Program-made: the position numbers and the translations under genes
In this document: in pieces, positions 25,031 through 59,651 of the stretch
How positions within the stretch are numbered: position 1 is the stretch's first letter
Layout: the number at the start of each line of letters is the position of its first letter
The notes under the pieces: model-generated
What the model was told of the DNA's origin: nothing
What the model saw: only the letters and a program-made list of their open reading frames with translations
Databases searched by the model: none
Assembly: GCF_000143415.4 (NCBI RefSeq)
Contig: NW_003314273.1
Location: 2,418,719-2,482,718, forward strand
Source of the DNA: Selaginella moellendorffii
Taxonomy: Eukaryota; Plantae; Lycopodiophyta
Direction of reading: 5' to 3'
Length of the DNA stretch: 64,000 nucleotides

Positions 25031-26520
25031 TGTCACGAATGTGACTTTAGGTATCGAAAGTTATCTATCGGCTAGTCCTTTCAGATATTCTTTTCTTACT
25101 GCCATGACGGTAGGAAGTCAGTATTGCTGGACCCTTTATCAATCCCTCTTGTACTAGTGGAGTTAACTTGGCATTTCGAGTGTACTTAGACTAGATGAGC
25201 ATAAGGACGGAATTTCTACATGTTATTAGTTAAACATACTTAACCCAGTAAGGAGTTCNNNNNNNNNNNNNNNNNNNNNNNNNNNNNNNNNNNNNNNNNN
25301 NNNNNNNNNNNNNNNNNNNNNNNNNNNNNNNNNNNNNNNNNNNNNNNNNNNNNNNNNNCTTACTGTGTCTGCAAATACCTTTGCTATCATGCCTTTTGTG
25401 TTAATCTCATTATAATCCCAAATGCTATTTATAAAAAGTGTCTAGATTTGCTCATTTGGCATATCTATGGAATGGTGTTCATCTCGTATCCAAATTCGTA
25501 ATCTAAAGACATTCCATATTTAATAAGTTTTGAGTTTGTCCCAAATACTAACTCTTAGTATTAAGGGTGGCTAAGGGTGAAAGCCCAAAGCATGTGTTGC
25601 TCAAAGGTGGGGGACGGGGGGGAGGCTATAGGGGGTGTAAGTGACTAAATTTTCCATTTTACTTTAGTCATTTAACTACACTTCAACCATTTGGAGGAGT
25701 CTCACTCATAACCTCCATAAATCTTATTCCAGGCTTAGGGCTTGTTAACCCCGAGAATGGCATCCTTGCCACTCAACCTTTGCACTTGGTCTAAGTGCTT
25801 TATATGTTTAATCCTATGACCAACACCCAAAGGTGGAGCTTGTTGGGAGTTTCACTCTCATTCTTGACTTTCTGAGTCAAAGCTTTTTAGTCAAAATGTG
25901 TTACTCTCATTTAGCTTCCATTTCAACCACTACCATATGGCACCCTTTCGGTTCCACTTTTGGGGCTCTAGAATTTATATCTCATAGAGGGTTCCAAATA
26001 TATAGTAGGGATAGTGGGTAGGTTAAGCATGGCCGACCAACTTGAGGCATAGTCTAACTCCTATTTGCGTGCCTATCCTTGTTCTACATTTGGCTTGGGT
26101 CTAAGCCCAAGTTCCATACCATACTAGTCAGTGAAGTATCTATATCTTCACATTAGGCCACCAATATGCTGAAATAGTGATAGACTCTGTTTGGCTCCAT
26201 TTTGTGTGCTGGTCCTAGCATTGGGATGCTAGATGCTCTAGAATTGTTCCAAATTGCTCTGTGCTCCTATCTTTTTGCTCATTGGGTTGTATGCTTAGGA
26301 GTCATTCTGTGCTCTAATTCTTTTTCTCCTTGGCTCCATGCTTAGGAGTTTGGCTTTGTTTTTTCATTCAATGGCTCAAGGCTTTGAAACTCAAATTCCA
26401 CTCCACTGTCTTTAGGGACACGTGGCATGTGACACATGGCACATGAAGGGTTTATGTTCTACTTCGTGGTTATCCTATAGTAAATCACTATAAGATAAAA
26501 GGTAAACCACATTGCCAACA
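25031..26520 (+). mobile_element. LTR family A inserted in internal E (spans the N gap)
   Basis: Starts TGTCACGAATGTGAC like 17675; the 3' half matches 18280-18815. Confidence 0.8.
25636..25986 (-). mobile_element. Internally deleted mini-LTR D inserted in LTR A
   Basis: Carries both LTR D termini (reverse complement of 30830-30956 and of 27176-27300); putative 5-bp TSD GGGGG/GAGGG. Confidence 0.65.
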
Positions 26521-32731: not shown

Positions 32732-33552
32732 CAAGAAATTTATAAGATAGATGAAATATAAATGACTTATTATGTAAAGTTGTTTTCCTTATGCTAATAT
32801 ATAATAGAAAAATAATAGTTTAATAGATAGTTTTAATTTATTTTAAAATAACATAAAACAAAATAAAAAAGATATTATAAATTTATAATTAATTTGTTTT
32901 ATAAGGGTCATCGAGAGACTTCTATTAGTTGAATGAAGCTGCAGCTGCCGTCGTGGGAGGAGAAAATTTGTAGGAGCACCCTTCTTNNNNNNNNNNNNNN
33001 NNNNNNNNNNNNNNNNNNNNNNNNNNNNNNNNNNNNNNNNNNNNNNNNNNNNNNNNNNNNNNNNNNNNNNNNNNNNNNNNNNNNNNAATCCGGACCACTC
33101 GCTCTTGTATATAAGCTAGGGTTTTTGGGCTAATTGATATGCACATTTATGTATTCCCTTTCCATATTCCAAGCACTCACAACTTGTAATATATATAAAA
33201 ACTAATACTCCAAAAAACTGAAAAATAAATTTAAATATAGATAATCACAATGAATAAATATTGATCTTTTATTTGTAAGAACCACTATATATATTACTAT
33301 TAACTAAAGTACTTCACAACAAAATAAACAAGATAAATATTATAAATTTAAGAAAAAACTTTAAAGATAAAAAGTTTTACATTTATAAAACAAATTAATT
33401 ATAAATTTATAATATATTTTTTATTTTGTTTTATTTTATTTTAAAATAAATTAAAAATATCTATTAAACTATTTTTTTATTATATATTAGCATAAGGAAA
33501 ACAACTTTACATAATAAGTCATTTATATTTCATCTATCTTATAAATTTCTTG

Positions 33553-43551: not shown

Positions 43552-45246
43552 TTATACAAATCTCCTCCACAACCAGTGCCTCTTCCACAAGCCACTCATC
43601 TCTTCGATTGGAATCCCTTTGGTCTCGGGCAGCAGCAATGCGGCAAAGAGCGTCATGGCCACGAGGAATGCCGCGAAAAGGATGAAAATTCCATACTTGA
43701 GCACGCACAGCATGGAGAGGAAGGACTGCGCCATGGCGAAAGTGAACAAGAGATTGGTGCACACGGTGATGCTCTGGCCGGCGGAGCGAACCTCGAGTGG
43801 GAAGACCTCGCTGGCGACCAGCCACGCCAGAGGACCCCAAGACCATGCAAATCCAGAGATGAACAAGCACACCATGAGCACCACCGCCATGGCCTGCATT
43901 GGCGTGAGAAGATTCACCGAGTCTTTTAGTCCGAGGCCGAGAAGAATCGCAATCCCCACCTGCAAGAAGAATGGATCCATAAGAAAAACTGGATTTTGGA
44001 AACTTGAGCTTACTTGAGCGATGAAGAGCTGCACGCCAGCTTCGAGCAAGAGAATTTTGCGTCCGAATCTATCCACGACCACCATGGAGATGATGGTGCA
44101 AACTGCGTTGATCCCGCCGATGACCACCGTCGAAACCAGTGAGGCATTGCTGCCAAATCCTACAGTCTCGAACAGCACCGGCGAGTAGAACATGATAGCG
44201 TTGATTCCACCAGCTTGCTGGAAGAACTGGAGGCAGATCGCGCAGATGAGCGGCGGCAAGTTTTTCTTCCGGATGATGTCCCGGAACGGGTTCTTGATCA
44301 AGCTGGAAGCCACGCCAACTTCGACGAGATCGTTAAACTCTTCCTCCACTTGGTCGGTTCCCCGGATCTTCTCGAGCACTTGCTTCCCTTGAGTCAAGTA
44401 GCCGCGCTCGATCAGACTGTTTGGCGTTTCCGAGAGCACGAAGCTCCCGAGAGTGAGAAGAAGTGATGGGATCCCTCCCAGAGCAAAGGACAGCCTCCAT
44501 CCCCACGGATATGCTGCCGTGAAGTAGTTTACCAAGTTGGCGATGAGGATCCCGGTCGTGATGTTTAGCTGGAAGAGAATGTTAAGTCCTCCACGCAAGT
44601 GTGGCGGCGCAACCTCTGAAAGATAGAGTGGAGTAGCCTGCGAAGAACAAACTCTCGATCGATCAGATCAGCCTTGGAGAGGAAATAAGATCGAAGGAAA
44701 ACGCTCACCTGGTTTCCAAAACCAATTCCACAGCCAAGGAAGTCGCGACCGATGATGAGCATGGGAAGGCTTTGAGCTCCAGCATTGAGGACAGTCCCCA
44801 CGAGATAGAAAATCCCAGCGATGAGCATCGTCGGCTTTCTCCCCAGGTTCCTCGTCGTGTAGGACGCCCCAAACGTGGAGATCAATCCCACAACATAGGT
44901 CGAGGACGTGAAAAGCTGAAGAAGCTGGTCATTGTACCGGCAGTAATTCCCGGATCCGCTGCTGCCTTTCGATGGATCGCGGCTGATCGACGGGAAGAAC
45001 TTCGCCAGGAAAACTTTCATTGCCGACACACCGCCTGGAAATCGAGATCGACCGATCAGCCAAAGGAGATTTTAAGGATCTTGCGATCGATCACTCACCA
45101 GAGATGCCGATCACATAGCCAAACATGAGGCCGCTGCTGGCAGCGATGACGCAGGCGATCAAGACGCTGGATGTGAATTTCTTCTTCTCCCTCTTGATGA
45201 GCTGTTCTTCGCATCCTTCCAGCGTTCTTCCCTGGTCGTCCGCCAT
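43552..45246 (-). CDS. Sugar transport protein (STP/MST hexose transporter, STP13-like), 4 exons
   Basis: FLAKFFP, NYCRYNDQLLQLFTSS, GRKPTML, PLYLSEVAP, QFFQQ.GINAIMFYSP, DRFGRK, WSWGPL.WL..SEVFP, PETKG. Introns at about 45098-45035, 44709-44638 and 44033-43960. Confidence 0.93.
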
Positions 45247-47878: not shown

Positions 47879-48754
47879 TCAGAACGGCGGTCGGTTCCCG
47901 GCAGCGGCCCACGCGAGAACATCGGGAGGAAGCTGGCAATTGGCTAGAGGATTCTGAGCGAGGTTGAACAAGGCCATGCTGCATGGATCCGAGGTGACTC
48001 CGGAAGCCGCCGACACATTATTACTCGCAACCTGGTTGGGGTCCTCGTCCTCGAGCGGAAGTCGATCATAAGTCGCACCAACGAAAGAAGCGGCGATGAC
48101 GAGCACTGGACTTGCAGCCATTAGAACTCCCACGACGCTGCCTCCCAGGACTTGACCGGGCTGCGATCCAGCCAAGGCCACAGTGAGTCCAGCCACGGCT
48201 ACAGGCGCGGGAGGAGGCAGGAAGGCTCCGGACAGGGACAGTATCTCGAAGCGGCCATGGAAGGTGACGGTGGAACCGGGTGCTGCGAGCTGCCGCAGCG
48301 TGACATTGGCGACAGTACCGCTACCGCCCAGCACGCAGAGCCCGCGCTGCCTTCGTCTAGCAAATGCGGCTAGAGTCTCTCCAACGTCGCATCCGCCGGC
48401 AATCTCCAGGACGTGCGGACGCATGGCATTGCCGCTGTCGCGGGTGATGATGATGGGTGGCTTGGGCTTGTTCTTGGAGCCGGGTGGCCGGCCACGGGGC
48501 TTGCGGACAATCTCCCCGGCTCCCATCCCGCCGCTGCTACTGGTGGTGGCCGCCGTCTTCAAGTTCTTGTTGTTACCGCGGGACTTGTCGATGGTGGTGG
48601 GGGTGGTGATTCCTCCCGGACCTCCTCTTCCGGGGCCGCTGCTGTTACTGTTCTCTTCCTCGGAGGTGCCGGCCTGGGCCAATGGTAGCGGGCTTACAAA
48701 CTGGTGGTGGTGGTGGTGATGCTGGTGGTGGTGACCGTGAAGGCCAGGATCCAT
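47879..48754 (-). CDS. AHL: AT-hook motif nuclear-localized protein (clade A AHL, intronless)
   Basis: AT-hook [17 protein letters not shown] followed by a PPC/DUF296 domain (MRPHVLEI...[10 protein letters not shown]...GQVLGGSV...AASF). His-run at the N-terminus. First ATG at 48754. Confidence 0.95.
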
Positions 48755-49613
48755 GCTCTTACATGCCAGCAACCGGGTGCCGGGATGGAAATCTTGACTG
48801 GCTCCCTGTCGAGAGGGAATTACTGCTCATCTACTCGACCGACACTAGTGACTTCGGCGCTGGTAACAGGACCAGATCTGATCTGATCTCGGCCAATTCT
48901 TGCCTCCTGCTCAAGCGAAACTGCAGTACAGCGATCGAAGGTGAGAGAACTCTCGCAGAAATCTCTCATTTTCTTTTCTTATTCTTTCTAAAATGCTTGC
49001 TCACCCTCTTTCAGTTTCCCTGTTGGAAGATATCAATTTGGACGACGCGAGTCCGCTTGACGCACAGTGGTATTGGCCCGGCAGCGCTATTTTCTAAGCC
49101 CAGTGGAGCAACATGAGATGGGGAAAAATAAGCAACAAAGGCAGCCAGCAATCTCCCCGGCAAAGACACTGATGACGTCGATCGAGCAGGCTTAGTGACG
49201 AAGAGACATAGATAAAAGAGTAAGCAGCAGGAGCAGCAGCAGCAGCGGCAACAGCAGCACCAACAGCAGCATCAAGGGAATAGCCAGCAGCAGCACCAGC
49301 AGCGGCAGCACACAACAAGAAGCAGGAGAAGAAGTAGAAAAGAAAGGGAGCAAGGCAGACCCACCAAGGGAGAGGCAATCTGGAGCCAAAAAAATTGCGG
49401 ACACAAGATTTGCGAGGCACCTCCCAGGGGATATTAAATTGGCAGAATAGAGCCGAGCTCGGGGCCGGGGCAAAAGAGCGATGCCACACACACTTATCTT
49501 AGCAGCGCTGGTGGTGCGAGACGACGAGCAGTGGTGATTGAGAAAACAAAGACGAAACAAAGGGAATGGGGGGTCGACGAAAATACTAAACAAGTGAGCT
49601 TATGGACTGGGAG

Positions 49614-52600: not shown

Positions 52601-53026
52601 AGACTCACTTGGACGAGCGCGGACCACCGCAATTTCTCTCTCTCGTGTGCGTGCACAACATCACTCGCTGTCGTCTCATTCCCCTGTTGTCTTCCTCCCC
52701 AAAGAGCGAAGGCCTCGCCACACCTATTAAATCAATTCTCCCTTTTTTCGGTATTTGTCACTGAGCTGTCTGTAACTCGCCCAGTCCTGTAGTCCAGTCC
52801 CGGCCTTCTCTTTTTTCCACTGTCGTTCTTTTTTGCAGCGCCAGGCATTTCGTAGACCAGGAACTTGCTGGAAAAAAGAAATCATCCCCGCCCCCGTGAG
52901 GTGGTTTTCTTTTCTTTTCTTTTTTCTCGAAACGTACGTAGCCAGCCCCGCACGATGCTGTGATCTTCAGTAAGTAAAAGAGTGTCGCGTACCTCGTCGA
53001 GTTACGAGAAAGGATGCCGCTTTCTC

Positions 53027-54526
53027 TCAGAGCCTGGAAGGAATAAGTGGTGTGCTCTCTTGCAAGTATGCCTGCGCCGCAGCAACGCCGCTTCCCAGTT
53101 TTACCGGGAAGCCAACGTCCTTGAGTGCCATTTCTACTCCAGCCAGAGCAGAGATGAGTTGAAGCTGCGAGAGTGAATGATCCGCTTGAGGTCAGGAGGA
53201 AAGTGAGAGATGAAAAGACTTACTTCGTTTAAGAATCCCAAATGTCCGATGCGGAACACCTTTCCTGCCACCTTGTTCAGGCCGATTCCAATGCTCAAGT
53301 TGTATTTTCTCCAGGCTACACGAACCACGTCTGTGCTGTTCAAGTAGGATGGAACCACGACGGCAGTCACCGTATCACTGTACAGCTCTGGATCTTTGAC
53401 GCAAAGCTCGAGGCCCCAAGCTTTCACAGCCAACCTGGTGGAAGCCAAAGAAACGCTCAGTATAATGCTAGACAGAGAGAAAAAAAAATCTCTTAGAACT
53501 ATACCTGGTGGCATGAGCTAGCCTGTGGTGTCTCTTGATGACATTTTCCAGGCCTTCTTCAAATAGAAGATCGAGAGCTGCTCGGAGGCCGTAGAGCAAC
53601 TGTATGGAAGGCGTGTATGGCCAGTAAGAGCCGAGCTCGTACGACTTGAGATAAGCTGACCAGTCGAAGAATCCCCGCGGAGAACGAGCAGACTTGGAGG
53701 CCTCGAGAGCTTTGGGACTGGCACAGAGGATACCGAGACCGGTTGGAAGACCGAGCGATTTTTGCGAGCCAGTCAGAGCAACATCGACTTTCCACTCGTC
53801 CATGCGAAACGCGAGTGCTCCAATCGACGAAACTCCGTCAACCAAAAGCAGAGCTGGATGCTGGTTTAAATCTGCTCCAAGACAAGAAGCAAGTAGAACA
53901 ATTATCTTAGCCGTCTAAGAGAATCCCAGGAAAGCTTTGATCTTACCAAGTATGGCTCTCACAACTCCCAAGTTGATGTTAATACCGGTGGAAGTTTCGT
54001 TATGAACGACACACACCGCCTTGATCCGGTGCTCCTCGTCGGCTCTGAGCTTCGAATCGAGAACTCCCAAGTCGACTCCGCCTCCCCATTGGCACTGGAC
54101 AGCGTCCACGTCGAAGTGGAGTTTCTGGAGCTGCTGGCTCCAGAGATGGCTAAACTGCCCAAACACGAAAGTGAGAACGCGATCTCCAGTAGAGAGAGTG
54201 TTCACAGCAGCGCATTCCCACCCTCCAGTCCCTGCCAGGAAGAAGAAGAAGAAGAAAATCCCAGAGTAAAAAAAAACTCTTAAGAAACTCCCAAAAACAC
54301 TATTCTCTAGATTAAACATACCAGTTGTGGGGATAATGAAGGGAGTCCCAGATTGCGTGGAAAAGATGCGCGTGACGTCCGCAAGGAGCTGCCGTGAGAA
54401 GACCGGGAATGCTGGCGATCGATGATCCTCATTGCCGCGATTCAGTGCTTGCATCACCTTTTGCGGGATATTGGATGGCCCCGGCACGAAGAGATGATTC
54501 CGCCCTGGCGCCATGAAGTAGTCCAT
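53027..54526 (-). CDS. AGT1: Peroxisomal serine/alanine:glyoxylate aminotransferase, 5 exons
   Basis: MDYFMAPGRNHLFVPGP, PTTGTGGWE, VHNETSTG, VDGVSSI, PLP lysine in GSQK, WPYTPSIQLLYGL, VFRIGHLG. C-terminal PTS1 PSRL*. Confidence 0.95.
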
Positions 54527-54684
54527 GGAGCAAATCCGCCGCCAAGGAAGAAAGCCCGCCGCTTTCGATCGATCGGCCGAATGAGGCGCTAGAACCCTAA
54601 CTTTGCTACTTCGCCGAAATATGCTAGCATGCGCGATGAGCTAGCAATCGAATTAAACTAATTAAACAAGATCACATCTAATAC

Positions 54685-54685
<1 letters not shown>

Positions 54686-54744
<59 letters not shown>

Positions 54745-54755
54745 CACACACACAC
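54686..54755. repeat. Compound (CT)n(CA)n microsatellite in the AGT promoter
   Basis: Direct reading. Confidence 0.95.
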
Positions 54756-55103
54756 AAGTAGTTTTGGTATTTTTCCCATTCCCATAGAAAAAGATTGCGT
54801 AAAATCGATGCGCAGTGGCCTTTCCATGAACAGAATAATTCCTCGCTTATGTTCTTTCTTCTCAATCAATGTTATTCGCTGAATCATAGTACAAGTTCTC
54901 TTTGGAGATCAATCCTTCACGCAAAAGTAAAAAAGAAAACTTAGAAGTTTAGATCAAAAGAACCACGAAGCTTGACTTATTCTCGTCAAAGAAACTAGCG
55001 CATTGTCTTGTCCAACTCACTTTCCCGCACCTGGAGGATACTGTAAAGGAATATAAAACTAGCAAGAAATTTACCTTCGGACATATCAGCTTTGCGACAA
55101 TGA

Positions 55104-55543
55104 GGAATCGTCCGGCGCAACGTACCATTCCAGTGGGAGGGGACCAATGGCTCAAAGAAATGGCTGGACTCCTGCTCAATCAGTCAAGGTGGAGAGTTTA
55201 GACGATGCAAATCCAACTACCAAGTGGTGGAGTGGCTCTACGCTGAAATTCGCAGGAGCGATCTCGGCAGTGGCACCAACACCAAAGTCGCGATTCGCAA
55301 GTGAGTGAAGGAGACACGGTCACATAATCGGGAACAGGGAGGCCTCGGAACATCTTCCCTCAGACTCGAAACATCAACCGGGGCGTGAAGCTCATCAATG
55401 ACGCGGCAATGAAGAACACTGTGAAGGTGTGGTTCCGGTTTGAATATGGCAACGCGGCGAAGCCCTGTCGTCCCACAAAGTTTCTCTGCTTCGTCGAGCT
55501 TGGAAGCGGAGCCACCATCAACAATGACTTGACTAATGCTTGA
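55104..55543 (+). pseudogene. Relic DNA/RNA non-specific (His-Me finger, Endonuclea_NS_2-like) endonuclease
   Basis: Three frames in succession give VVEWLYAEIRRSDLGSGTNTKVAIRK*VK, then GHIIGNR, then NIFPQTRNINRG...VKVWFRFEYG....RPTKF. Confidence 0.65.
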
Positions 55544-55677
55544 TATGAAAATCAGGTTTTCTTAAGTAGATATATTTGTATATAGCTTTGCTGGAGTGCC
55601 TGAAAAAGAGAAGAGAAAGAAAGAAAATAGATAAAAATGCATTCATGTATACAGATGAGTTACCAGAGTTTCCAATA

Positions 55678-56776
55678 TCATTCTTTCTCCGTCGATGGAG
55701 CGGTAATGTTTGCTTTGAGCCACCTCGAAAGATTGGATAGAAACGGTGTATACGCAAAGTAGCAACATATGACCCAGGTAACAACACCCTGAAACATATT
55801 CACGTACTTGAAGGCTAGATGAGCACGACTGTTACCTCGTCAAAAATGAATATATTCGGATTCGAGTAGTGCCACAAATGAAACCACCTGTAGGTAGCAA
55901 AGCACGATTTCGTGAAGTAGCCAGCAAGACAAATTGAGTTTTTCTAACTGTTGAGCTTACTTGATGATGGGAATCTCCAAGGCAGGACACAACACACCAA
56001 CAAGGCTCGCAAGAGCAAAGCCATGCACTGTGCCCTCAAATAAAGCCCAGTTGAGTTGAGCGCCGGCAAACAGTATATATGCTTCGATGTTGTAAGGCAC
56101 ATTTGCTCGGTACAATTGAGCGCTCAGCTCAAGATAGAAAACCAAATATCTGTAAACGAAAAAAACTCTAAACTTTAGAAAAAATTGCAAGAAATCTCGA
56201 CTTACACAAAACACAGAGCTAGCTTCTCGAAACTTGGAGGTCGAATCGGCCTGTTCCTAGCGAATTGCTCGTCAAGTGCTAGATGCAACAATCCAACAAC
56301 ACCATAGAACGTCCCAAGAATTGGAAACACCTGTTAGTGGATTTAACCCAAGAAGAAGAAAAGCAATGCTTTTAGCGAGCAGGAGTTGTCCAGTAGCTCA
56401 TGTCCTCCGTACCCAGAGATTGGTGCGAAGGGGCCCGATGTTGATTGCCCAATTGCCATAGACCTGGAGTTCAACGCTCGAATGAATGGCGTCTAGAAGA
56501 GGCCCGAGAATAAATCCCGCTCCAAACAGAGCGCCACCGATGACCCCCAAGCCTGCCAGAAACTGGGAACGCGACATCAAAAAGAGCTCCGTGACAGAGA
56601 TTTTGGGAGATTTTCGAATAAATACCTCGATTGCTTGGAATCTTGTCGCTTCCTCCACTCGCATTGCACGCGGTGAGCCGGCTCCTGCCAAGCCGCGCTC
56701 GCTTGCTCGCGGCCGTGCGAGATATCCCTAGTACAAATCGAGGAGTCGCGCCATCGCAGCACAGCGCCACCGCCAT
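55678..56776 (-). CDS. INSIG-like multi-pass membrane protein with probable transit peptide, multi-exon
   Basis: [80 protein letters not shown] introns. Confidence 0.8.
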
Positions 56777-56846
56777 CGCCCAAGAACCCTAGCTCCTTCC
56801 CGCTACAAACAAGAGCATATTCCTCAGCCCGAGCCCTAAAGTCATG

Positions 56847-56858
56847 CGCCACGTGGCG
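56847..56858. promoter_or_regulatory. Palindromic G-box CGCCACGTGGCG in the divergent promoter between the INSIG-like gene and CML
   Basis: Perfect 12-bp palindrome about 70 bp upstream of the INSIG-like ATG; reverse CCAAT (ATTGG) at about 56874. Confidence 0.55.
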
Positions 56859-57317
56859 AATACGAGGGTTTTGATTGGCTGCATGGAGCCAAGAGGGTTG
56901 TGGCTCCAAGGGCCCGCCCTCTCTTTCCGAGGGCCTTCCTTTCTCTTCTCTAAGTTTCTCGCCATTCACCAGCATTTTGTGGAGCGATCGAAGCAGCGCG
57001 GCTATGGCGTCGCTTCTTCTCCACGATCTGGCCGGCGCCGCATTGATCTAGCGGACGGGGGCTATCGCTAAGTCTCTTTTGTCGGTAGAGGCGCGGGCCT
57101 TGTGGGATCACGAAGCCGCCGACGCGGAAGACGCAGTGAAGCTGCTGCCGATCGGTGGAAATCTCACCTCAAAAGCTTCGATCGAGCTTTCCGGCGAGGA
57201 TCCGAGGTAAAAGAGAGGTAGATTTCTTGGATATTTCGGGCAGCGATAGCGGAATGCTGGCATCGCAAGGCGGCATGTGGTGAGATTTCCAGGCTAGCTA
57301 TAGGCGCGCGCACGACG

Positions 57318-57983
57318 ATGAAGCTCCCGAAATATTTGAGGAGGAAGAACGGATCTTCGTCAGCGTTTTCCAGCTCCAACGAGTCGAGATCATCCAAGTC
57401 GGCAATGGAGGGCGATCTCAAGGCCCCGCTCAGCAGATCCCAATCGGCCGAGATCTCCTCCGACTCCTCCTCCTCCTCCTCGGCTCACAGCAGCATGAAC
57501 AAGCAGCAGCATCCCAGGCACATCCAGGAGCTCGAGCACGCCTTCCGCTACTTCGACGCCAACGGCGATGGCAAGATCTCGGTGGCGGAGCTCGGGGGAG
57601 TGCTCAAATCCCTGGGCGAGAACCCGAGCGAGGAGGACTTGAGAACGATGGTCCGGGAAGTTGACGCGGACGGGGATGGGTTCGTGGATTTCGACGAGTT
57701 TGTGCATCTCAACACGGAGATCTTGGGCGACGCGCTGGCCGCGAGCGTGGAGGAGCTCAAGGCCGCGTTCTACGTCTTCGACACGGACAAGAACGGCTAC
57801 ATTTCGGCGGAGGAGCTCTACAAGGTCATGTTTAACTTGGGGGAGAAGGGGGTGACAATGGAGGATTGCAACCGGATGATTGGGGGAGTCGACTCGGATG
57901 GCGATGGGTTTGTGAACTTCGAGGAGTTCCAAAGGATGATGTTGAGCAGCAGCAGCAGCAGCGCTGCTCCCTCCACCGCATGA
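57318..57983 (+). CDS. CML: Calmodulin-like protein with 4 EF-hands and a Ser-rich N-terminal extension; intronless
   Basis: EF loops [36 protein letters not shown] and [12 protein letters not shown]. Confidence 0.95.
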
Positions 57984-59651
57984 TAGCGACGAAGCTTTTT
58001 TTCTTCTCCGCGCCAAGGTGAGAGCTCTCAAACCAAAATTCTCCCTTTTTCTTGTTGTTTTGTGCTTGTTTGTTTGCTTGTTGTTTCCGTTTTTTTTCCG
58101 TTTTCGTGCGCGCTCTAATCACGATTTCTACAGAAAGTGGCTAACTTATTCCTCCGCTTTTCTGTAGGCCTAGCTCATCTATCAAGCCATGATCACAAAA
58201 CTTTGAAGCTCCTTCCTCCCAAATCTTGGGGAACCTTTTAAGATCTCTTTAAACTTTGGCTCATCTCATCTCCTTTTTCCTTGAACCCTGCCTTTTTCTT
58301 CGCAGTCTTCTCAGTAATTTATAATGCAAGAAGCTCCCATGATCGATAATGGGGGAGTTTTAAAGCTTGTTTGTGGACGGTGTTTATTATAGGTGTTGGC
58401 CCGCGTAGCCCCGAGTGTGGCCGGACAACTGTGATTGACAAACAATTGTCCTAGCAGGTACAAATCCTATCCTTTTCTTTCTACATTTTTTTTCCTTAAA
58501 AACTCTTTGCTTGTGCTGTAGGTGCGCAAAGAGCGCTGATTTGTGACGAAAGCGAGTAACTTACTAGGTAAGCTTAAAGCTGCTGCTGCTGCTGCGCGAT
58601 TTCCAAAAGGTGACCGAAGAGATGTCATGGCATCTCTGTGACTTTTTTTCTTTTTTTTTTTCTAACGAAAATGCGTCTTTCCCAGGGAAAAAACTTGATG
58701 GGCGCTGGTTGCGCATTCATCACTGCCGCGTTTTTGACCAGTGCCGGCCTTGGAAGAAGCGTGACAAAAACGGGTGCTGCGAAGAGGAAGGTAGGTTTGG
58801 AGTTACTTCACACACACCTGACTGACTCTTTCTCATTTGGCTGAAAGGAAAGCGTGCCCGACTGACACGACGAGACGACTGTGGCGCAATCTTTTCTCTC
58901 CTCTTTTTCGCGGCAAGCACCAAAGCGGCGGTGGTCCAGTGAGAAGTTGGGAGTTCATTCTCGTTTTTTTGTTTTCGATGGAAACTCTCGGCGCAGATCT
59001 GGACGGAAACATTGATATTGGGCTCCAAGAGCGCGACAATTGCTCTGCGGCCTGGCCTGGCCTGGCCTGGCCTACACCGGACTGGAGAAAAAATCTGGCT
59101 TTCCAGTACGACAAGCTTGCCGTCCTTCGTGCTGCTTCGCGGAGCGCCAAAGTCAGAGCTACAATTTCTATCCATGGCTCGCCCCGCCGCGAGGAAAAAG
59201 ACGTGCGCCTGAGGCGGGCGCTCACGCGACTTCGAAGTTTCCAGCGGGGGCCAAATAGATTTTTATTCTTCCTTTTCTTCTCTTTTCATCACCGACTTGC
59301 GAGAAAACGCGCTGCTGCTAAAACTCGTTCTTTTACTCGGCTTACTCGGCCTGCCGCGAAGAACAGAAGAACTCACTTTTCATCCAAGCATGGAAATTGG
59401 GAGAATTTACCTCTTTCTTAAGAGATTGCTCCGCCCTAAACAATGCGGCCCTTGCCTGCGCGAGAATTATCAATCTAGCAGCTGAAAATTTCATGCCCTA
59501 ACCTCGCGATCTTCTTTCATTTGCTGCTCCGGCCTGACCCAGAAGAAGTACACGGTGATCGCAGCTATAGACCAAGCTGCGACATTGGCGCGGCCGCGAA
59601 CGCCACCTAAAAGATTGCCGAGGATTGCAGACACCGGCGTCCTCGGCATTG

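Follow-up and report, generated by a model that had tools for sequence, protein, structure and literature searches.

A dead EssD-like nuclease pseudogene in an antisense 3'UTR exon of Selaginella moellendorffii and the history of its family

The genome of Selaginella moellendorffii harbours, on contig NW_003314273.1, a short stretch of DNA in which fragments of a toxin-like nuclease can be read in successive plus-strand frames, raising the question of whether these fragments are the remains of a genuine gene and, if so, from where such a gene came and what became of it. In the following, all positions refer to the window, the whole stretch of 64,000 nucleotides (nt) that was analysed. An initial annotation had quoted peptides from three plus-strand frames, which were recovered by translation of 55000-55600 at the positions given for them, including the TGA at 55302, the Gly-His at 55318 and NIFPQ at 55349. 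The reference point chosen there, the flowering plants, was misplaced, as the genome is that of a lycophyte.

Identity and lesions of the relic

The plus strand of 55100-55543 constitutes a full-length pseudogene of an EssD-like PF13930 His-Me finger nuclease, spanning from the canonical ATG of the family to the stop codon. The region proposed initially was right, with the relic being larger, as it starts at the ATG at 55100 (M-R-N-R-P in the relic versus M-x-N-R-P in relatives), and with six frame changes instead of the two assumed. The TGA occupies 55302-55304, the Gly-His pair 55318-55323, NIFPQ 55349-55363, NINRG 55370-55384 and the terminal stop 55541-55543. With a GC content of 52.9%, compared with AT-rich flanks of 35.7% and 28.6% and 42.5% for the window, the relic represents a GC island; on its minus strand no long open reading frame (ORF) was found.

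The identity of the relic has been established by several searches. A phmmer search with the 71-aa piece encoded by 55328-55540 against 1.84 billion proteins retrieved nine matches at E<=1e-3, of which six are PF13930 Endonuclea_NS_2 proteins (best E 4e-8; five above the gathering cut-off). In size these are proteins of about 136-177 aa or, where the match falls at the C-terminus, of 700 aa, and they share 42-51% identity with the piece across residues 7-70. A family hidden Markov model (HMM) built from 20 family members (alignment A2), with the relic left out, matched among 3953 six-frame fragments of the window solely 55328-55540 (E 6e-20) and 55104-55301 (E 3e-8). Equally, intact relatives as tblastn queries produced two colinear high-scoring pairs on the relic in different frames, and at the DNA level the relic aligns colinearly from ATG through stop with two intact genes, one on an mRNA-like contig (L004, encoding P0010) and the other an S. 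moellendorffii gene in locus L001. Neither tblastn nor the family HMM detected further family copies in the 64-kb window. On the other hand, Pfam and NCBIfam scans of each relic piece gave no match (PF13930: none at E<=10, the gathering cut-off being 27 bits), and a word-based protein search with the 71-aa piece, restricted to a length window of 39-124 aa, returned nothing. The assignment to the family is therefore transitive, via intact relatives; the profile comparison foreseen initially failed with PF13930 on the pieces and succeeded with the subfamily HMM. By descent, as judged from the subfamily HMM match at E 6e-20, the relic is a member of PF13930.

The lesions and a retained motif of the relic are as follows, with deletions defined in the DNA alignment A1 against the two intact relatives.

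After 55143, plus strand: deletion of 10 nt, frame change
After 55175, plus strand: deletion of 9 nt versus L004 and 6 nt versus the S. moellendorffii gene SmL001, in frame
After 55192, plus strand: deletion of 1 nt, frame change
55302-55304, plus strand: TGA stop in frame, on a column conserved across the family
After 55315, plus strand: deletion of 24-38 nt, frame change; the conserved Asp-Asp-Ala before Gly-His is gone
After 55334, plus strand: deletion of 4 nt, frame change
After 55345, plus strand: deletion of 13 nt, frame change
55349-55389, plus strand: retained NIFPQ...NINRG motif with both conserved Asn kept
After 55389, plus strand: deletion of 21 nt, in frame; the invariant Glu column is gone

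In total, five deletions break the frame, two preserve it, and a single stop has been acquired. In an alignment of 64 sequences, the invariant columns, in the numbering of the intact Selaginella protein, are D108, G111, H112, G119, N127, N136, G138, E145 and R174. The motif series D-D/Q-A-G-H, W-N-I-F-P-Q, N-x-G, Glu and R-P is complete in the intact Selaginella copies and incomplete in the relic, which keeps G-H (with the catalytic-type His codon at 55321-55323), N-I-F-P-Q, N-R-G and R-P and is devoid of Asp-Asp-Ala, the Trp before N127 and the Glu. With the conserved Asp pair and the Glu lost, the relic is dead and unable to encode an enzyme. Furthermore, the lesions are real and not assembly errors, since the sequence of 55073-55598 is reproduced by RNA-like contigs from three studies without a single difference or gap.

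Antisense placement in a neighbouring transcript

The relic had been placed between two genes. This location did not hold once contigs from three transcriptome-sized runs and one DNA run were positioned on 53000-58000: the relic resides inside a transcribed 3'UTR exon of a membrane-protein gene on the minus strand, to which it is antisense. The RNA nature of the RNA-like runs is presumed, and their assembled contigs are compatible with a weak sense-strand transcript. The setting comprises the following features.

53000-54536, minus strand: class-V aminotransferase gene, the upstream neighbour, spliced with introns of 59-75 nt
55029-55072, minus strand: 44-nt 3'UTR intron, joint seen in contig sets X1 and X10
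55073-55598, minus strand: 3'UTR exon of the membrane-protein gene, defined by RNA-like contigs with CT..AC junctions to 55028 and 55663; the entire relic is contained in it, antisense
55599-55662, minus strand: 64-nt 3'UTR intron, 15 nt downstream of the stop codon, joint seen in X1, X3 and X10
55678-56783, minus strand: coding exons of a multi-pass membrane-protein gene, 242-aa open frame in the spliced model, stop codon 55678-55680

All junctions in 53000-58000 end in CT..AC, that is, GT..AG on the minus strand. The minus-strand transcript includes the further exons 54832-55028, 55663-55788, 55836-55885, 55959-56149, 56206-56328, 56411-56562 and 56626-56783, and contig X10 record 7 joins the relic-bearing exon to the coding exons. 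Because the open frame of the membrane-protein gene stops at 55678-55680, the relic exon and the introns 55599-55662 and 55029-55072 belong to the 3'UTR. The 242-aa product looks like a conserved multi-pass membrane protein, and Pfam, searched exon by exon, assigned no family to it. The aminotransferase gene has a weak PF00266 match (E 0.01) on an exon read through an intron, and, judged by the N-terminal sequence, presumably encodes the serine-glyoxylate aminotransferase AGT1. Located within a spliced plant transcript among genes with spliceosomal introns of 44-82 nt, and found in DNA as well as RNA-like runs from 10 studies, the relic is truly integrated in the host genome and not a contamination. 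The small introns and the closest named homologue are both in keeping with S. moellendorffii as the host.

Several observations on the surroundings can be added. The second 3'UTR junction of the membrane-protein gene is situated about 540 nt past its stop codon. With introns placed beyond the stop codon in this way, an mRNA is usually open to nonsense-mediated decay, and regulated transcripts often show such an arrangement. Between the aminotransferase gene and the 3'UTR end of its neighbour, a (CA)n/(GA)n microsatellite extends over 54658-54762, where contigs break. In the RNA-like runs, contig depth is by a wide margin greatest over an EF-hand (calmodulin-like) gene on the plus strand (57118-58000; ORF 57318-57983, 221 aa), the contigs of which differ from the window by small in-frame lengths (6-8 nt), suggesting alleles or haplotypes; an exact look-up of this ORF in the protein collection gave no match. 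Elsewhere in the window, minus-strand ORFs encode a sugar transporter (43552-44598; PF00083, E 1e-68) and a PCC-domain protein of the AT-hook/AHL type (47879-48772; PF03479, E 5e-21), and assembly gaps of 100 N are located at 25259-25358 and 32987-33086. An Rfam search of 54500-56000 gave no match, and no notable repeat or hairpin was found. A retrocopy was also considered, as an A-rich tract lies about 60 nt past the stop of the relic, but is not supported, with neither a target-site duplication nor flank similarity to the living copies being detected.

How the relic is to be read can be decided against this background. That short His-Me-like motifs have arisen accidentally in non-coding DNA might be argued from the single pieces that match neither Pfam nor NCBIfam and from the blank word-based search of the 71-aa piece; yet with both family HMM matches (E 6e-20 and 3e-8) being the only ones among 3953 fragments and with an alignment to intact genes that is colinear over the full length from start codon to stop codon, such an accident is vanishingly improbable, and chance resemblance has, on the sequence evidence of phmmer, tblastn and family HMM, already been refuted. 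Extremely improbable is equally a live gene, in which the frame changes would be assembly errors or be bypassed by recoding with the nuclease still produced. Transcription of the region and the retention of the catalytic-type His and both conserved Asn would accord with such a gene; against it stand the contigs of three independent studies that reproduce 55073-55598 exactly, the five separate frame breaks plus the stop, the deletion of the conserved Asp-Asp and the invariant Glu columns, and the spliced transcripts, the sole ones seen deriving from the opposite strand. A co-opted relic, on the other hand, which in antisense orientation in the 3'UTR would regulate the mRNA of the neighbour or, by base pairing, the living nuclease paralogues, is very unlikely. 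The stable inclusion in a spliced 3'UTR exon in several studies and the two 3'UTR introns, a frequent mark of regulated transcripts sensitive to nonsense-mediated decay, could speak for a regulatory role; the DNA identity to the living paralogue of just 65% is too low for RNA-RNA targeting, neither Rfam nor the inspection for repeats and hairpins pointed to a structured element, and the many deletions resemble neutral decay. The best overall explanation, with a probability of roughly 0.92, is a dead PF13930/EssD-like nuclease pseudogene, an old duplicate of the Selaginella lineage, which is now antisense 3'UTR DNA and is without a function of its own.

Intact sister genes and their fold

Intact paralogues, the existence of which had been anticipated, are indeed present in S. 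moellendorffii as two tandem ORFs of 198 aa with a signal-peptide-like leader, located on GL377634.1 (about 112-124.5 kb; L001:5911-6507 and L001:11098-11694). Between them lie a germin-like gene and, at about L001:9780-9960, a fragment of the nuclease family with an internal stop; further neighbours are germin-like cupin genes. The 21-residue leader of both copies combines a basic residue and a core rich in Leu with small residues at -3 and -1. The public model LOC112340718 (XP_024515362.1, designated P0003 here; 136 aa, 'uncharacterized protein') treats 33 in-frame codons as an intron and takes an internal Met for its start. The GL377634.1 locus, read directly, contains instead an uninterrupted ORF of 198 aa, so that XP_024515362.1 is mis-spliced. 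An exact look-up in the protein collection found neither 198-aa sequence, and the second copy is unannotated there. Between the tandem ORFs, 44 of 594 nt are different, and a dN/dS of 0.18 indicates purifying selection.

XP_024515362.1 is the closest named relative of the relic and its sister in the tree. The relic shares 65% nucleotide identity with the living copy (dN 0.33, dS about 1.5, dN/dS 0.23), and a ratio far below the neutral expectation since the split suggests that the relic probably remained functional over a long period, the estimate of long constraint before decay being rough, as dS is near saturation. The flanks of the relic showed no similarity beyond shuffled controls to the living copies, the leader-coding part included, and the relic exhibits the leaderless form alone. 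As to the defence-nuclease system conjectured initially, a partner or immunity gene was recognised neither beside the intact copies, with their germin-like cupin neighbours, nor beside the relic, with its aminotransferase and membrane-protein neighbours.

The initial reading of a decayed, intronless nuclease of the Endonuclea_NS_2 type is borne out by the intact relatives, which pass the PF13930 threshold, match the EssD structure 8GUO and share the fold of EndoG, EsaD, EndA and the Serratia nuclease. The intact sister scores 32.3 bits versus PF13930 (cut-off 27), and the relatives P0003, P0005, P0006, P0009 and P0001 pass as well. The family profile matches EssD 8GUO with E 7e-10 and the Serratia nuclease with just E 0.1. 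An AlphaFold model of the intact 198-aa sister, derived from the 64-sequence alignment, reached a pLDDT of 87.2 and a pTM of 0.81. Foldseek against the PDB retrieved 50 matches with this model at E<=1e-3, nearly all of them beta-beta-alpha-metal nucleases, led by EndoG, EsaD (8GUN), EndA, EXOG, NucA and the Serratia nuclease, with two ENPP1 chains lower down. As modelled, the fold of the intact sister is thus the beta-beta-alpha-metal fold of the EndoG/Serratia nuclease group. In the 2017 classification of His-Me finger nucleases, PF13930 and PF01223 are placed together in group 5, non-specific nucleases that serve as bacterial virulence and competition factors (PMC5714182). By homology to the nucleases of this group, the living proteins should be metal-dependent, sequence-non-specific DNA/RNA nucleases, with Mg2+ as the predicted metal and with export predicted for the Selaginella copies.

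Among the closest known systems is EssD/EsaD, the nuclease toxin of the type VII secretion system (T7SS) of Staphylococcus aureus (8GUO, 8GUN), the nuclease domain of which is matched over about 115 residues and, in the case of EsaD 8GUN, superposes with the intact Selaginella model at 2.6-3.9 A over about 135 columns. The motif series D-x-G-H ... N ... N-x-G ... E ... R-P is common to EssD/EsaD and the Selaginella proteins. In contrast to EssD, the Selaginella proteins are stand-alone domains of about 170 aa without the LXG/T7SS delivery region, in place of which the living copies carry a eukaryotic-type signal-peptide-like leader; no EsaG-type immunity gene is present near the Selaginella copies, and the copy in the window is dead. 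The same PF13930 domain forms the C-terminal tip of polymorphic toxins, in cyanobacteria and an uncultured 5.4-Mb genome as proteins of 620-730 aa (Nostoc, Fischerella) and as Rhs proteins in Dickeya, Pectobacterium and Serratia. Unlike these toxins, which fall outside the clade of the relic, neither the relic nor the Selaginella copies possess an N-terminal repeat or delivery module. The PF01223 (Endonuclease_NS) nucleases, namely the Serratia nuclease, EndoG, EXOG, EndA and NucA, have the same fold and catalytic layout, with a general-base His and a Mg-binding Asn, and are the top Foldseek matches (E 1e-5 to 1e-3, TM about 0.45-0.54), although at 12-18% sequence identity and with the plant family being about 70 residues shorter. 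Several family members show weak PF01223 matches below the cut-off, and the family is therefore considered a sister family within the superfamily group and not a member of PF01223.

Relatives, origin and history of the family

A profile search recovered 152 relatives among proteins sourced from NCBI, UniRef and EukProt, with S. moellendorffii as the sole named plant. Other named relatives are Neoroseomonas eburnea, bdelloid rotifers (Adineta) and Rhs toxins of Dickeya, Pectobacterium, Serratia and Pantoea. A scan of GTDB genomes added Nostoc and Fischerella, in which the domain tips the 620-730-aa proteins, and a metagenome scan added two contigs of about 1 kb and four distant matches with uninformative context. 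The contig contexts of P0034, P0005, P0009 and P0052 are plainly bacterial. Two kinds of contigs encode the closest relatives of the Selaginella genes, at 50-57% identity: mRNA-like ones of about 1 kb, in which a GC-rich coding sequence is framed by extended AT-rich UTRs, and one of 3 kb, on which a single GC-rich gene is embedded in AT-rich DNA. Both kinds look eukaryotic. All family members seen are intronless. In a limited search of the literature, no paper describing an EssD-like nuclease family in Selaginella was found.

In a maximum-likelihood tree of 56 rows, in which the relic was read with X at the breaks, the relic pairs with the living Selaginella gene as its sister (support 99/87). 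The clade of this pair holds two eukaryote-like groups and the bacterial P0034; alphaproteobacterial and cyanobacterial members are positioned further out, with the rotifer and Rhs sequences beyond those. The bacterial stand-alone member of 168 aa closest to the plant genes is located on metagenome contigs (L008:10001-10507 and L009:10001-10507), in a region rich in mobile elements with DDE transposases, a resolvase, integrases and a TacA-type antitoxin module. This nuclease gene is met by a converging ORF of 64 aa, which could be an immunity candidate. A feature-based Atlas search placed clusters of about 185-aa PF13930 proteins on top that are mostly labelled Nucleocytoviricota. This giant-virus lead is unsupported, as two pattern scans of IMG/VR with narrow patterns from alignments A2 and A3 retrieved no relative and a paper on giant-virus footprints in Selaginella leaves the nuclease unmentioned.

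The horizontal acquisition suggested initially is upheld in part. The family is mostly bacterial with one named plant, bacterial clades surround the group and P0034 is nested inside it; the nearest relatives, on the other hand, reside on eukaryote-like, mRNA-like contigs, and the phylogeny places eukaryote-like clades next to the Selaginella pair. As the simplest reading, the family most likely entered eukaryotes from bacteria, possibly in the Selaginella lineage itself and possibly in an older ancestor, the nesting of P0034 among eukaryote-like sequences making the direction less certain. Vertical descent would imply an old plant or eukaryote gene family that was lost in seed plants, with the relic as a decayed paralogue of a native gene. 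Such descent appears unlikely, albeit to be taken seriously: the nearest relatives (50-57% identity), whose contigs resemble mRNA or eukaryotic DNA, flank the Selaginella pair in the tree as two clades and could come from other non-seed plants, against which it has to be held that no named plant other than S. moellendorffii appears in the 152 profile matches, that every member seen is intronless, that P0034 from a bacterial contig rich in mobile elements nests inside the clade and that bacteria make up the clades immediately outside it (Neoroseomonas, alphaproteobacterial and cyanobacterial toxins).

For the preferred reading of a dead duplicate in a family of bacterial ancestry, the following course of events can be proposed. 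The family would have entered eukaryotes from bacteria, in which the domain is found either alone or as the toxic end of large polymorphic toxins. The relic itself is an old duplicate that arose in the Selaginella lineage, with the two intact tandem genes as its sisters; it has kept the original leaderless start codon, whereas the living copies carry the 21-residue signal-peptide-like extension. Probably under constraint for much of its history, the relic gene subsequently decayed by the five frame-breaking deletions, the two in-frame deletions and the stop, and in the process lost the invariant Glu as well as the Asp-Asp that precedes the catalytic His. No protein is made from the relic today, its DNA apparently being transcribed only as the antisense strand within the spliced 3'UTR exon of the neighbour. 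A more specific and only tentative possibility is that the relic is the fossil of a leaderless first stage after the transfer of a bacterial toxin nuclease into a lycophyte ancestor and the tandem copies a second stage, marked by loss of the original start codon and by an export signal gained through an extension upstream, the subfamily having also spread to several other eukaryote lineages. If true, the two loci would record the stepwise taming of a bacterial toxin domain, dangerous inside the cell, into a secreted plant nuclease.

What is new is the dead family member, the EssD-like PF13930 family itself being already known. The relic indicates that the Selaginella lineage has carried the family for a time sufficient for duplication, dispersal, divergence (dS about 1.5) and the loss of one copy, which argues against contamination and a very recent arrival. 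The original start codon retained in the relic helps to mark the export-signal extension of the living copies as a later addition. Equally, the relic points to mis-annotated living genes, as the 136-aa model hides a 198-aa ORF and the second copy is unannotated. Apart from providing a clean example of a dead gene absorbed in antisense orientation into the spliced 3'UTR of a neighbour, the relic thereby draws attention to its living sister copies as candidates for a secreted plant nuclease of bacterial ancestry.
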